Source: Macrostomum lignano
Lineage: Eukaryota
Assembly (NCBI GenBank): GCA_002269645.1
Contig: NIVC01003967.1
Coordinates: 1 to 64,000, forward strand
Reading direction: 5' to 3'
Length of the DNA: 64,000 nt
The notes beneath the pieces are model-generated. The model had not been told where the DNA came from. It made no database searches and worked only from the letters and a program-made list of their open reading frames with translations. Positions 16,488 through 33,660 of this stretch are shown here, one piece after another. Made by a program: the position numbers and the translations under genes. Every line of letters begins with the position of its first letter. The first letter of the stretch is position 1.

Positions 16488-16793
16488 AGTAGTATAGAAA
16501 AAGACGCTTACAGACCCAGAGCACTTTATTAATGACCGTTTTAAGGGTCTAGAGGGGGGACACGGGGGGTAAATAAAAAAACACATCTAAACACCATTAA
16601 TACATCTAATCACCCATAATCACCCCTAACAATAAAAATCATTCCCAACACTTCCAAACACTCCCCAACACCCCCTCGCGTCCCCCCTCTTAAGACCTTA
16701 AAAACGGCCATTAAAATAAGGTCTGATCTGTAAGCGTCTTTTTCTATACTACTACTCTATAACCCCTTGCCCGCGCCGCAGGCGCGAAGGGTC
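16488..16793 (+). repeat. Left terminal inverted repeat (306 bp)
   Basis: Matches reverse complement of 33355-33660 with one mismatch (16528 A vs T). Confidence 0.98.
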
Positions 16794-16975
16794 GGAAAGA
16801 ATAGAAGCTATTTATAGTCAGCTCACCTACCCACCCAACATTCCATTTAGACCAGATTTTAGACCAAACAAAACTAGACTATCGTTTTGGTTTTCGTTTT
16901 CAAAAATTTGGTCTAAAATCTGGTCCAAATGGAATGCAGACAATCTTTTTTCTGTTACTAAAAATAGAACAAAAA

Positions 16976-17374
16976 ATGACACACGTTACACATATGCAAA
17001 ATCTGAATGAATTGCAGGTAGGAGACCCAGTTGAATACCGAGGTGAGGGGCTTTTTGATGTGGTTGGAACAGCAGCAAATTTTGTTAAAGACAATATGGG
17101 GCTTATAGGGCAAGCTGGCTCCGCAGCAGGTTCTATAACAAATGCTGTAAAAGGAGGAATTGAAGCAGCTAGAGCGGCAGAAGAACTAAAGAAATTGAGA
17201 GATTTTAACGACACCCTCTCACAAATAAATGCAATAAAAGATTTAAAGCTGGCACAAGCCGCACAACCAACAGAAACCCCCACGAAAAGCGCGCCAATAA
17301 GTAATAAAGATATTCAGGATTTTAATAAAATGTTAACCACAATTAAAGGCGGAAAAGGATTAAAGAAATTTTAA
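16976..17374 (+). CDS. Polinton orphan, probable protease-processed core protein (132 aa from ATG 16976)
   Basis: AAAAAATG start context; YRGE|G, VKGG|I and IKGG|K adenain-like sites. Confidence 0.65.
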   Translation: MTHVTHMQNLNELQVGDPVEYRGEGLFDVVGTAANFVKDNMGLIGQAGSAAGSITNAVKGGIEAARAAEELKKLRDFNDTLSQINAIKDLKLAQAAQPTETPTKSAPISNKDIQDFNKMLTTIKGGKGLKKF

Positions 17375-17384
17375 CAATATAAAA

Positions 17385-18371
17385 ATGGACACAGATAACG
17401 ACCGCTTATATTTTATAGGAGAAATTGTAGATACTTTAGATCTAGATGATAATAAACATAGCCACACAATGTTAAAAAGATTGGATCGTTTAGGTAAAAA
17501 ACTTGACTACGATATCGATACATTTAAACTTGCTGCAAAATATGCACAAGAAGGAAGGCCAATATCCTTTAAGAATCATGGTAGAAATTATAGGTTGACA
17601 GACTCCGATGTAAAATTTTTATTGGAGACTCACACTAAAAAGGACGGCGGATTACTACCCATTCTACCGCTTCTTTTAGGACTTGGCGCAGCTGGAGCAG
17701 TCGGTTTAGCCGGAAAAAGAATTCATGATAATGTAAAACAGCTAGGAGAGTTAAGAGCGAAACAGGGGGGAATCTTGCCCCTTGCAGCTTTATTACCAAT
17801 AATTTTTGCAGGAATAGGAGCAGCTGGTGGAATAGCAGGGGGCGCAGCTGGAATCACAAAAGCAGTAAATGATAAAAAAGCTGCGGATGAAAAAGCTAAA
17901 CGAGATGCAGAATTTCAAAGACAGCAAATAACACAGGACGCACAATTCAAACAGAAACTTATTGATACCATTAATAGTAGTTCAGCAACAGCAGAGCAAA
18001 AAAGAAATGCAGAAGCTAGGTTAGCAGCCGGAAAAGGTTTACTCTTGCAAGGAACAAATCACGGGAATGGTTTGGTACTAAAAGGAACAACCCAAGGAAG
18101 TGGAGTTGTCGCAGATAAACTACATGAATTTGGCCAAACTTTAGAAAAAACGGGTGAGAAAGCTAAAGGATTTTTTGACAATATTGGATCCAATTTTAGA
18201 CCAGCTGTTCAGAAAATTTTTAATAAATTAGGAAAAGATTTTAACATCATTGAAAAACACGACGGAAGCGGATTATATCTCGAAATGAGACCAAAAGCAG
18301 GTTCAGGAATTTTCTTAAATTCAAATGTTATGGGAAATGGATTGCTATTACCAAAAGCAGATCTCGAATAG
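17385..18371 (+). CDS. Core polyprotein with two adenovirus pX (mu precursor)-like hydrophobic segments, 328 aa
   Basis: KDGG-LLPILPLLLGLGAAG and KQGG-ILPLAALLPIIFAGIGAAGGIAG resemble adenovirus pX MRGG-ILPLLIPLIAAAIGAVPGIAS; six G[KNS]G-hydrophobic motifs in the C-terminal part. Confidence 0.75.
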   Translation: MDTDNDRLYFIGEIVDTLDLDDNKHSHTMLKRLDRLGKKLDYDIDTFKLAAKYAQEGRPISFKNHGRNYRLTDSDVKFLLETHTKKDGGLLPILPLLLGLGAAGAVGLAGKRIHDNVKQLGELRAKQGGILPLAALLPIIFAGIGAAGGIAGGAAGITKAVNDKKAADEKAKRDAEFQRQQITQDAQFKQKLIDTINSSSATAEQKRNAEARLAAGKGLLLQGTNHGNGLVLKGTTQGSGVVADKLHEFGQTLEKTGEKAKGFFDNIGSNFRPAVQKIFNKLGKDFNIIEKHDGSGLYLEMRPKAGSGIFLNSNVMGNGLLLPKADLE

Positions 18372-18455
18372 GCTCCTGGGGGGAGGGTCTGGACACCAAA
18401 AACACAAAATTAAAAAATCAATAATTCAAACATTATATAAATTTTATTCTATAAA

Positions 18456-32783: not shown

Positions 32784-32793
32784 GTTCGAACAG

Positions 32794-32961
32794 TTACTTA
32801 AGACAACAAGGTAGTAAATTTTTTATAACAAACAAAAACAATATTATTACTATTATTGTTACTAATATTATTATTGACATTTGTTCAACTGTTATCAAAC
32901 TTAAATTTTCATTAAGTTCATTAATCGGCACATTTCCGATGTAGGAATAATTTACCTTCAT
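32794..32961 (-). CDS. Small single-pass membrane protein, 55 aa (absent from ORF track)
   Basis: TAAAAAAAATG start; MKVNYS..SIIILVTIIVIILFLFVIKNLLPCCLK*. Confidence 0.55.
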   Translation of the reverse strand: MKVNYSYIGNVPINELNENLSLITVEQMSIIILVTIIVIILFLFVIKNLLPCCLK

Positions 32962-33022
32962 TTTTTTTATATATATTTTTCATAATAAATGTCGTTTCTG
33001 TTATAGAATAATAATTCATTTT

Positions 33023-33337
33023 TTACATAAAAATTTCAATTTCATTCTCAGAATCACTGGTTTCATATGAGCTATTTGTTGATTCGGAATCTGTTGATCT
33101 AACCTCCCAATCATCCGAATTTAAATAATCTCCAAGTTGAAATATTAACTCTCCCTCTTGTTCTAATTCATACATCTCATCTAGCTCTAATGGATAAAGC
33201 TTTAGGTCATGCTTGTCGTCATATTTTAAATAAACTTCATCAATTATTCCATTCAAAATATGTTGTTTTATTATCTCTGCATTTTTAGCAACAGTCTCAA
33301 AAGTATCACTAACAGAAAAGGTGTAAACTCGGGTCAT
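33023..33337 (-). CDS. Polinton acidic orphan, 104 aa
   Basis: TAAAAATG start; D/E/S-rich C-terminus. Confidence 0.65.
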   Translation of the reverse strand: MTRVYTFSVSDTFETVAKNAEIIKQHILNGIIDEVYLKYDDKHDLKLYPLELDEMYELEQEGELIFQLGDYLNSDDWEVRSTDSESTNSSYETSDSENEIEIFM

Positions 33338-33354
33338 TTTTAGTAACAGAAAAA

Positions 33355-33660
33355 GACCCTTCGCGCCTGCGGCGCGGGCAAGGGGTTATAGAGTAGTAGT
33401 ATAGAAAAAGACGCTTACAGATCAGACCTTATTTTAATGGCCGTTTTTAAGGTCTTAAGAGGGGGGACGCGAGGGGGTGTTGGGGAGTGTTTGGAAGTGT
33501 TGGGAATGATTTTTATTGTTAGGGGTGATTATGGGTGATTAGATGTATTAATGGTGTTTAGATGTGTTTTTTTATTTACCCCCCGTGTCCCCCCTCTAGA
33601 CCCTTAAAACGGTCATTAAAAAAGTGCTCTGGGTCTGTAAGCGTCTTTTTCTATACTACT
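33355..33660 (-). repeat. Right terminal inverted repeat (306 bp)
   Basis: Reverse complement of 16488-16793. Confidence 0.98.

Follow-up and report, generated by a model that had tools for sequence, protein, structure and literature searches.

Polintons/Mavericks and adintoviruses are regarded as animal viruses of ancient origin that also behave as transposons, and direct evidence of their recent activity in animals is thin. The classical Polintons/Mavericks of animals were reportedly described by Kapitonov and Jurka in 2006 and by Pritham in 2007, and AG...CT termini are a feature of the family. These elements are 13-25 kb long, with TIRs of 100-1,500 bp and a TSD of 5-8 bp (typically 6), and encode pPolB, INT, PRO, ATPase, MCP and mCP (PMC10748475). 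Alpha-type adintoviruses (Starrett et al. 2021) additionally have PLA2, pX-type peptides, fibre/lectin and membrane-active proteins (PMC8502044).

We analyzed a window of 64,000 nucleotides, the start of contig NIVC01003967.1 in an assembly of Macrostomum lignano (GCA_002269645.1). A sequence-only reading had taken the segment at 16488-33660 for a very recently integrated Polinton with a full virion toolkit, and hence for a provirus able to make infectious particles. The question that the locus raises is whether such an element is indeed young and whether, in the copy at hand, it is still a virus.

Results

Boundaries and termini

Measured between the two TSD copies, the element at 16488-33660 is 17,173 bp long. 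Its ends comprise the following features.

16482..16487, no strand: left TSD copy, GAACAG, 6 bp (present once in the sister contig, which lacks the element)
16488..16793, plus strand: left TIR, 306 nt, begins 5'-AG, complementary to the right arm at 305/306
16488..16753, no strand: foldback unit within the left TIR (inverted-repeat analysis and ssDNA fold)
33355..33660, minus strand: right TIR, 306 nt, ends CT-3', complementary to the left arm at 305/306
33661..33666, no strand: right TSD copy, GAACAG, 6 bp (present once in the sister contig, which lacks the element)

The arms carry exactly one mismatch per 306 nt, as had been claimed along with a perfect TSD; both claims are borne out. The repeat extends neither inward nor outward, the termini read 5'-AG...CT-3', and length, TIR and TSD all lie within the classical Polinton ranges. 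Inside the left TIR, a perfect inverted copy of the terminal 27 nt lies at 16727-16753, and the interval separating the two copies contains nested imperfect inverted repeats; the right TIR mirrors this foldback at 33395-33660. The ssDNA fold of the TIR foldback reaches -62.6 kcal/mol (z = -14.4). We found no such internally palindromic TIRs in PMC8502044 or PMC10748475.

GC content is 27-36% in the element versus mostly 37-56% in the flanks, where a single 2-kb window falls to 33%. No further copies or fragments of the element occur within the 64-kb window, and tRNA and Rfam family scans found none. A search for a shared upstream promoter motif turned up just an A-rich TA(T/A)AAAA context ahead of many start codons, which is weakly significant.

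An exact empty site

A sister contig of the same assembly, NIVC01003173.1, is collinear with both flanks and carries a single GAACAG without the element. Because this is an exact empty site, it establishes where the element begins and ends, confirms the TSD, and shows that the element was inserted after the two sister copies of the locus had diverged. Near-identical TIRs, the perfect TSD and this empty site together uphold the description of the element as very recently integrated.

Between the sister contigs, the flanks diverge by 0.32% on the left and 0.93% on the right. The indel:substitution ratio is 0.13, typical of real divergence, and all indels are 1-3 nt long. Two flanking single-exon host genes (1.8 and 1.4 kb) are protein-identical across the two independently assembled contigs, and a flank gene product is 100% identical to an M. 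lignano protein. The element thus has an animal host, as the Alpha-type adintoviruses do. Its predicted "understudied invertebrate host" is indeed an invertebrate, the flatworm M. lignano, but a laboratory model species.

Published divergence between subgenomes S, L1 and L2 of M. lignano is 1.4-2.4% (PMC10733133), higher than that of the flanks, as would be expected if the empty-site contig represented the second allele instead of a homeologous copy from another subgenome and the insertion were a presence/absence polymorphism segregating in the sequenced line. However, the DV1 line is highly inbred, its allelic heterozygosity is negligible, and nearly all of its within-genome variation lies between the three subgenomes (PMC10733133). 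We regard an allelic origin of the empty site as improbable.

Capsid and virion-assembly genes

Six genes or ORFs on the minus strand make up the predicted capsid and fibre block, in which the order MCP-ATPase-penton-protease-fibre is conserved in relatives.

28754..30226, minus strand: MCP, double jelly roll (DJR), 490 aa, intact (full-length alignment without stops; fold model)
27985..28738, minus strand: predicted FtsK/HerA (A32-like) packaging ATPase, broken by one frameshift (relatives, PHROG, Walker motifs)
27185..27969, minus strand: putative penton (minor capsid protein), broken by one frameshift (family conservation and synteny)
26525..26965, minus strand: predicted clan-CE (adenain/Ulp1-type) cysteine maturation protease, intact (full-length alignment, catalytic residues)
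25471..26513, minus strand: fibre gene, shaft repeats resembling those of phage tail fibres, broken by one frameshift (PHROGs, structure match)
24644..25438, minus strand: 264-aa ORF 3' of the fibre, candidate distal fibre or receptor-binding protein, either its own gene or part of the fibre (starts with a SAGDKNKLD motif)

We found 234 members of the MCP family; the lineage of this MCP is sparsely sampled, with only three close homologues (41-49% identity). An AF2 model built from a 65-row alignment (pLDDT 87, pTM 0.87) replaced an earlier, poor one from a 4-row alignment (pLDDT 50). The top Foldseek matches of this model (E 1e-16 to 1e-17, TM 0.5-0.6) are without exception DJR MCPs, among them those of mavirus, Sputnik, SGIV and PBCV-1; its BFVD matches include a MELD virus protein and the capsid of an Adintovirus sp. 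With an hhalign match to a Pfam DJR-like protein (E 3e-6), the model confirms the predicted double-jelly-roll fold. Scans of IMG/VR and JGI metagenomes returned no relatives of the MCP.

The ATPase, 246-252 aa in relatives, is split across two frames in the window. It matches a terminase PHROG (E 7e-7) and, weakly, STIV B204; relatives carry a "faint" Pox_A32 Pfam tag, and the Walker A and B motifs that are invariant in them are present in the window copy. These matches point to the FtsK/HerA (A32-like) packaging ATPase of Polintons, though its gene is frameshifted. The penton-family gene sits between ATPase and protease, the expected position. Its relatives are 261-262 aa long and the homology in the window is spread over two frames; the profile had no match among solved structures (PDB), and the product is called a putative penton from family conservation and MCP-ATPase-penton-protease synteny. 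The protease is 66-69% identical to relatives over its full length, with catalytic H, D, Q and C invariant among them. Its profile matches ASFV S273R (E 2e-4) and, more weakly, ChlaDub and adenain (adenain E ~0.5), suggesting the adenain-like clan CE enzyme of Polintons.

The fibre gene matches tail-fibre PHROGs and the L-shaped tail fibre 8hqz (E 5e-4), and the N-terminus conserved in two relatives (L001 and L002) is found in a different frame. The initial SAGDKNKLD motif of the 264-aa ORF is of tail-fibre type; this ORF had no PHROG match and no PDB sequence match.

Single-sequence searches of PDB chains gave no significant match for the MCP, ATPase, protease or pPolB, and exact-product look-ups in public assemblies gave no record for the MCP, the truncated ATPase product, the protease or the GPCR flank gene.

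Polymerase and a PLA2-integrase fusion

Two further genes lie on the plus strand.

18456..22436, plus strand: pPolB, predicted protein-primed family-B DNA polymerase carrying a zinc insert (Endonuclease-VII-like), broken (homologues and motifs)
31509..32783, plus strand: predicted PLA2-rve integrase, single 424-aa ORF, intact (PFV integrase and PF08398-protein matches)

For pPolB we found 290 homologues (best match 46% identical, ~1140-1180 aa), the named ones being genomic copies from insects (33-35% identity). The gene keeps Exo I-III, motifs A, B and C and KxY, as would be expected of the protein-primed family-B polymerase of Polintons, though this gene too is frameshifted. Against eight relatives it falls into three collinear pieces in three frames, with gaps of 2 nt and 17-26 nt. 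That makes two firm frameshifts and one further possible one, since the N-terminal part is perhaps in yet another frame (weak evidence, p~0.01); there are no independent in-frame stops.

The 424-aa ORF consists of a parvovirus-type PLA2 (~residues 15-135), a linker of ~20 aa with two G-x-G-hydrophobic motifs, an rve integrase and a C-terminal SH3/chromo-like domain. The integrase core matches PFV integrase (E 6e-7) with D-D-E conserved in the alignment, and the PLA2 matches a protein tagged PF08398 (L005, E 3e-12) and retains the GxG loop and HD dyad. The ORF would thus supply both the rve integrase of Polintons and the parvovirus VP1-type PLA2 of Alpha-adintoviruses. The fusion is not a lesion, as 13 of 48 relatives are fused likewise, and the G-x-G boundary motif at the PLA2/integrase junction is kept in all 13. 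The G-x-G-hydrophobic motif occurs 12 times versus 1.6 expected. A scan of IMG/VR found no relatives of the integrase, and an exact search there for the terminal 20 nt found none.

Catalytic motifs of polymerase, integrase, protease and ATPase are all present, as the sequence-only reading had stated, and its MCP, fibre and PLA2 assignments agree with the DJR model, the tail-fibre PHROGs with 8hqz, and the PF08398-tagged match, respectively.

Accessory ORFs

The remaining ORFs are as follows.

16934..17374, plus strand: 146-aa ORF, two G-x-G-hydrophobic motifs, candidate processed virion/core peptide precursor (homologue search: none found)
17385..18371, plus strand: 328-aa Gly/Ala-rich protein, two TM-like segments, six G-x-G-hydrophobic motifs, candidate membrane-active precursor (TM/motif scan)
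22422..22802, minus strand: 126-aa ORF, lineage-specific (homologue search: none found)
22818..23255, minus strand: 145-aa ORF (homologue search: none found)
23178..23690, plus strand: 170-aa Cys-rich ORF (PHROG search: no match)
23658..24314, minus strand: 218-aa ORF, one TM-like segment (ORF list, TM scan)
24301..24870, minus strand: small ORF, likely product ~108 aa (internal ATG directly after the upstream gene's stop)
26967..27140, minus strand: 57-aa very basic ORF (25% K+R), candidate core/DNA-condensing peptide (composition)
30260..30931, plus strand: 223-aa ORF, candidate virion core/accessory protein (conserved with L001)
30959..31528, plus strand: 189-aa Endonuclease VII/HNH-like nuclease (phrog_1035 E 3e-6, phrog_2255 E 7e-5; homologue in L044)
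32794..32961, minus strand: 55-aa ORF, one TM-like segment (TM scan)
33023..33337, minus strand: 104-aa highly acidic ORF (25% D+E) (composition)

The small membrane proteins that had been proposed find a counterpart in TM-like segments of four small or medium ORFs; for a pX-like role, the element offers no more than candidate peptides, basic or processed ones. The hydrophobic core of the 328-aa protein (residues 126-186) is conserved in two relatives (L012 and L018). This protein is a candidate only for a pVI/pX-like role. The 223-aa ORF corresponds to two ORFs in L001, and its conserved C-terminus bears a G-x-G-F motif.

Real lesions or assembly errors

Relative to intact homologues, pPolB has two frameshifts (possibly three) and ATPase, penton and fibre one each, for a total of five (possibly six). 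The MCP, protease and PLA2-integrase are open; the element as assembled lacks the fully open core gene set of an active provirus. There are no in-frame stops beyond those due to the frameshifts. Introns are ruled out as a cause of the frame changes, the pieces being collinear with relatives and the gaps only 2-26 nt. With four genes frameshifted as assembled and no room for introns, the proposal of a provirus able to make infectious particles is not sustained; of the "full virion toolkit", the gene set stands, but four of its core genes are broken, which had been overlooked. The copy is a weak candidate for a "live" virus, because these four core genes are interrupted as assembled. Missing gene models were dropped as evidence against expression, as the GenBank annotation left out repeat-overlapping transcripts.

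We think that the frameshifts are probably real and that this copy is no longer autonomous, because three of the five shifts lie away from homopolymers, the assembly was polished with Illumina reads, and the number of lesions fits local neutral indel rates. The alternative is an entirely open, potentially active copy whose five or six frame changes are consensus errors of a PacBio-based assembly. That assembly, made from PacBio CLR data on a polyploid genome rich in repeats and then corrected by Pilon using Illumina and RNA-seq reads, is acknowledged as error-prone, and the flank indels, at 1-3 nt, are in the size class of long-read errors; were every one of them an assembly error, the error rate would suffice for five shifts. 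The single TIR mismatch, the perfect TSD, the intact MCP, protease and PLA2-integrase, the retained catalytic motifs and the attribution of all stops to frameshifts also suit a copy that is in fact open. Two of the five junctions adjoin 6-7-nt homopolymers, but miscalls in such runs are ruled out as the only cause, since the other three junction intervals have no run >4 nt. The displaced segments are still well conserved (45-59% identity to relatives in their new frames), which fits an artefact and a very young mutation alike. Against error stand the Illumina and RNA-seq polishing, the open flanking single-exon host genes, two of them protein-identical in both contigs, and the normal substitution excess accompanying the flank indels (ratio 0.13), which argues that these are real differences. 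We consider wholesale assembly error rather unlikely.

If the lesions are real, they may have arisen after insertion or before it. Given how often indels separate the two contigs at this locus, 1.8-3.3 of them would be expected across the 8.2 kb assessed, whereas five are observed. Five is somewhat in excess of the expectation scaled to TIR divergence (1.8; P = 0.03), as it would be had the copy already been frameshifted at integration, a defective genome replicated, packaged or integrated in trans by intact relatives; the lesions would then be uninformative on the time since insertion. The integrase and both termini, which are all that integration requires in cis or trans, are intact, and fragmented ORFs are common in Polinton copies of other animals (PMC10748475). 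However, the age estimate is very imprecise, depending on one TIR mismatch only, and the five indels are compatible with the 3.3 expected if insertion soon followed the contig split (P = 0.24). Nor is another copy of the family visible in the window or in the protein collection, and hence there is no sign of a helper. A genome defective from the outset seems to us distinctly unlikely.

Discussion

The element is a complete-looking Polinton/Maverick copy of the adintovirus type, with an Alpha-adintovirus-like virion module. It shares size, TIR, TSD and core gene classes with classical Polintons/Mavericks; the nematode Mavericks differ in carrying a fusogen and in lacking PLA2 and fibre (PMC10748475). 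The Alpha-type (Mayetiola-class) adintoviruses of the proposed Adintoviridae are likewise animal-associated, ~15-20-kb linear dsDNA with ITRs, and share pPolB, rve integrase, DJR hexon-like MCP, penton, packaging ATPase and adenain-like protease, as well as the parvovirus-type PLA2, membrane-active accessory proteins and fibre/lectin genes (PMC8502044). Because all this has been described for them, the toolkit beyond MCP and penton is not novel as such. Their PLA2, however, is joined to a pX-like C-terminal domain ("PLA2X") and not to an integrase, and flatworms go without mention in that paper (PMC8502044); their genome is free-ended, whereas the M. lignano copy is integrated and frameshifted.

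More distant is the mavirus virophage, which provides the best solved-structure match of the MCP (6g43/6g45, E ~1e-17) at a sequence identity of only ~10%. It likewise has pPolB, rve integrase, cysteine protease, FtsK-type ATPase and penton and integrates with TIRs, but has a protist host, depends on a giant virus and lacks PLA2 and a tail-fibre-like fibre. Adenoviruses offer a functional analogy in their protein-primed PolB on ITR-bearing linear dsDNA, their vertex fibre and a clan-CE protease that processes precursors of core and membrane-lytic proteins (pVI, pX) by cutting at sites containing Gly. Unlike the element, they have no integrase or PLA2, and its candidate G-x-G-hydrophobic cleavage motif differs from the adenain consensus.

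Judging from the protein families, a linear dsDNA genome with 306-bp TIRs would be copied by its own protein-primed PolB, and the rve integrase would join the AG...CT ends to the chromosome, duplicating 6 bp of the target. A small icosahedral particle would be the product of the virion module, which consists of DJR MCP, penton, A32-like ATPase, clan-CE protease, fibre, PLA2 and membrane-active precursors rich in Gly. Maturation of the capsid proteins would fall to the protease, which probably cuts at G-x-G sites if its specificity is as the motif suggests, and which would also separate PLA2 from integrase. The number of young frameshifts, five or possibly six, would fit neutral decay after insertion, some perhaps having been present at integration.

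Should the frame changes be artefacts, M. lignano would carry an open, freshly integrated adintovirus-like element of a still-active lineage, whose integrase rides in the virion joined to PLA2, a combination of claims to which we give little credence. Were it true, this transparent, culturable, transgenic laboratory flatworm would be a tractable animal system for Polinton/adintovirus biology, and the PLA2-integrase polyprotein, whose conserved G-x-G boundary recurs in 13 metagenomic relatives, would tie the integrase in the virion to a membrane-penetration enzyme, from which the maturation protease would free it.

New here are the flatworm host and the empty homeologous site, as well as the recurrent PLA2-integrase fusion with its conserved G-x-G boundary and the foldback TIRs. 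The host record is extended to Platyhelminthes, with no earlier report found in the literature searched, and a capsid lineage so far represented by just three fragments from metagenomes is now tied to an animal element. The fusion with its putative protease site and the foldback termini may interest specialists more than the element itself. The locus provides an unusually clean before/after pair within one assembly, a filled site and its exact empty site, and the three subgenomes of M. lignano form a built-in clock.

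Element limits and the empty site

A repeat search of the window returned a single long inverted repeat, whose arms span 16488-16793 and 33355-33660. Direct arm-to-arm comparison of these terminal inverted repeats (TIRs) showed 1 mismatch in 306 nt and found no extension of the complementarity either inward (19/80) or outward. The element so delimited is 17,173 bp long, starts with 5'-AGTAGT, ends with ACTACT-3', and has GAACAG on each side; the coordinates and numbers stated in the sequence-only reading are thus correct. GC content is 27-36% over most of the element, versus 37-56% in the flanks except for one flank window of 33%.

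Three single-exon host genes lie in the flanks:

11199-13046, DEG/ENaC-type channel (Pfam ASC)
37950-39131, rhodopsin-type GPCR
60797-62176, Cys-loop channel/receptor (protein 100% identical to Macrostomum lignano BOX15_Mlig026767g2)

Two contigs of GCA_002269645.1 carry the ENaC gene. One, NIVC01003967.1, has the same coordinates as the window across the matched stretch (1199-23046). The other, NIVC01003173.1, is collinear with the window to base 16487 and then again from 33660/33661; it lacks the element and carries one GAACAG, with the junction reading ...CAGATGAACAG followed directly by GTCGACGC... This exact empty site proves the element limits and the 6-bp duplication, and it proves that the insertion is later than the separation of the two locus copies.

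The flanks of the two contigs diverge by 0.32% on the left and 0.93% on the right. As the sequenced line, DV1, is highly inbred with negligible allelic heterozygosity, and has three subgenomes that differ from one another by 1.4-2.4% (PMC10733133), the empty contig is more likely a homeologue than an allele, though its divergence is low for a homeologue.

The insertion point is an intergenic, satellite-rich stretch amid the three intronless host genes, none of which is disrupted. Tandem satellites and minisatellites crowd the flanks (3726-4552, 8100-10050, 15100-15950, 39770-40500, 41880-43250, 44100-46300 and 46590-48060) and generate long spurious ORFs, e.g., (IYLS)n translations. A mariner/Tc1-like transposase remnant at 57562-58182 (-), with DDD-type motifs HDNAAPH ... 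PYSLDLAPCDFWLF and without a start codon, is probably a decayed copy.

Each TIR is also internally palindromic: its terminal 27 nt are repeated, perfectly inverted, 212 nt inward (16488-16753; mirrored at 33395-33660), with nested imperfect inverted repeats in between. This arrangement allows the outer 266 nt to form a stem of ~83 bp (-62.6 kcal/mol, z = -14.4). The limits of this foldback unit are the element's own termini, and it resembles a possible MITE or telomere-like foldback.

Gene content

The element genes discussed here are as follows:

17385-18371, 328-aa Gly/Ala-rich protein with two TM-like segments
18456-22436 (+), pPolB
25471-26513 (-), fibre
26525-26965 (-), protease
27185-27969 (-), putative penton
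27985-28738 (-), ATPase
28754-30226 (-), MCP
30959-31528, Endo VII/HNH-like ORF of 189 aa, upstream of and adjoining PLA2-integrase
31509-32783, PLA2-integrase ORF

For pPolB, we found 290 homologues, the best of which (~1140-1180 aa, 42-47% identity) carry an Endonuclease_7 Pfam tag; the named ones are genomic copies from insects, with 33-35% identity. The complete set of exonuclease and polymerase motifs is legible in the translations. Two Endonuclease VII/HNH-like modules occur in the element, one as an insert within pPolB, whose relatives carry the corresponding PF02945 tag, and one as the free-standing ORF. PFV integrase matches the core of the element's integrase (E 6e-7); the protein aligns from its relatives' first residues, and both the D-D-E residues and a C-terminal SH3/chromo-like domain are conserved.

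Close homologues of MCP number only three (41-49% identity), and all come from short metagenome contigs on which the gene order is that of the window: MCP, ATPase, penton, protease and the start of fibre. In a profile search the family grows to 234 proteins, and hhalign gives a full-length match to a protein with a Pfam DJR-like domain tag (E 3e-6). A confident model (pLDDT 87, pTM 0.87), computed from an alignment of 65 rows, finds double-jelly-roll capsids only, namely those of mavirus, Sputnik, SGIV and PBCV-1 (E 1e-16 to 1e-17, TM 0.5-0.6), and in BFVD it also matches an Adintovirus sp. capsid and a MELD virus protein. The protease profile matches the clan-CE protease S273R of ASFV (E 2e-4), with ChlaDub and adenain weaker, and its His/Asp/Gln/Cys residues are invariant. 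Walker A and B motifs are present in the ATPase, which matches a terminase PHROG (E 7e-7), the fibre contains repeats of phage tail-fibre-like type, and TM-like segments are present in four element ORFs. The penton assignment is a putative one, made by family and synteny only.

The virion module is nearest to the metagenome contigs L001-L003 (48-69% identity), and the pPolB/PLA2/integrase module to another set, L005, L008 and L009, whose MCP is only ~22% identical to that of the window. These differing nearest relatives hint at an exchange of modules, as proposed for adintoviruses.

In the 100 nt preceding 19 gene starts within 16488-33660, start codons mostly come right after TA(T/A)AAAA or TTAAAA. 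TTAAAA itself occurs in 11 of the 19 regions (uncorrected p ~1e-4). This A-rich context may reflect an initiator or late-promoter-like signal common to the genes, or mere AT-richness.

Gene integrity

We gauged integrity against intact relatives, a yardstick that the other element ORFs lack. MCP, protease and PLA2-integrase have open frames over their full length. pPolB is split into three collinear pieces, each in its own frame, with gaps of 2 nt and 17-26 nt between them, which amounts to two frameshifts; introns are ruled out as the source because the gaps are so short. For its N-terminal part, there is weak evidence of yet another frame (p ~0.01 vs shuffles). ATPase, penton and fibre have one frame change each. 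No in-frame stops were seen in the compared genes beyond those caused by the shifts. Missing gene models in the element are uninformative, since the annotation dropped repeat-overlapping transcripts.

We consider the frameshifts to be probably real lesions, with assembly artefacts as the rival explanation. The genome is a neopolyploid rich in repeats, with a reference acknowledged as prone to errors; 6-7-nt homopolymers adjoin two of the shifts, the displaced segments are still well conserved, and the flank indels are all of 1-3 nt, as assembly errors might leave them. However, the PacBio assembly (Canu) was Pilon-polished with Illumina and RNA-seq reads, homopolymers do not exceed 4 nt in three of the five junction intervals, and two single-exon genes of the flanks have open frames and encode identical proteins in the two independently assembled contigs. 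Substitutions are in normal excess over indels in the flanks (ratio 0.13). At the local pairwise rate of 0.81 indels per kb, 1.8-3.3 would be expected over the 8.2 kb of coding sequence that was compared; the five observed (P = 0.03-0.24) are compatible with neutral decay.

A PLA2-integrase fusion

In the PLA2-integrase ORF, the N-terminal ~135 residues are a parvovirus-type PLA2 (E 3e-12 to a PF08398-tagged protein). The pPolB-close relatives L005, L008 and L009 encode PLA2 (159-169 aa) and integrase (271-275 aa) in two genes side by side. Taking these three together with the metagenome integrase relatives, 63 loci extend far enough upstream for a comparison; 48 of them have PLA2 directly upstream of integrase, and in 13 of the 48, among them the closest relative, L010 (56% identity), both domains are read in a single open frame; many PLA2-integrase neighbours sit in different frames. 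The fused loci are:

L010, L012, L019, L024, L026, L030, L033, L040, L041, L055, L059, L061, L062

All 13 have a basic-x-G-x-G motif at the domain boundary, followed by a hydrophobic residue in 10. The window has the same motif at its boundary, and where relatives keep the two genes apart, as in L005, the PLA2 protein terminates at it. Across the element proteins, G-x-G-hydrophobic (G-[SNAKE]-G-[LIVF]) is observed 12 times versus 1.6 expected, with six copies in the Gly/Ala-rich protein. Such sites are candidate maturation cleavage sites that would free small hydrophobic peptides. The boundary motif in fused loci, together with the PLA2 that ends there, suggests a protease-processed PLA2-integrase polyprotein, in which the maturation protease would recognise the G-x-G motif. 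We found no report of such a fusion in the literature searched.

Classification

Apart from the penton, which is putative, the element has every defining Polinton/Maverick feature as summarised in PMC10748475. The "extended toolkit" highlighted by the sequence-only reading corresponds to the published virion module of Alpha-type adintoviruses, which comprises PLA2, pX-type peptides, membrane-active proteins, and fibre and lectin genes (PMC8502044), and the element's kind is therefore already known. In the literature searched, we found Polintons reported neither from Macrostomum nor from any other flatworm. That reading had also proposed a provirus able to make infectious particles, which is not supported for the copy as assembled, given the two frameshifts in pPolB and one each in ATPase, penton and fibre. 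Its other part stands: a complete-looking Polinton is proven to have integrated recently at this locus.
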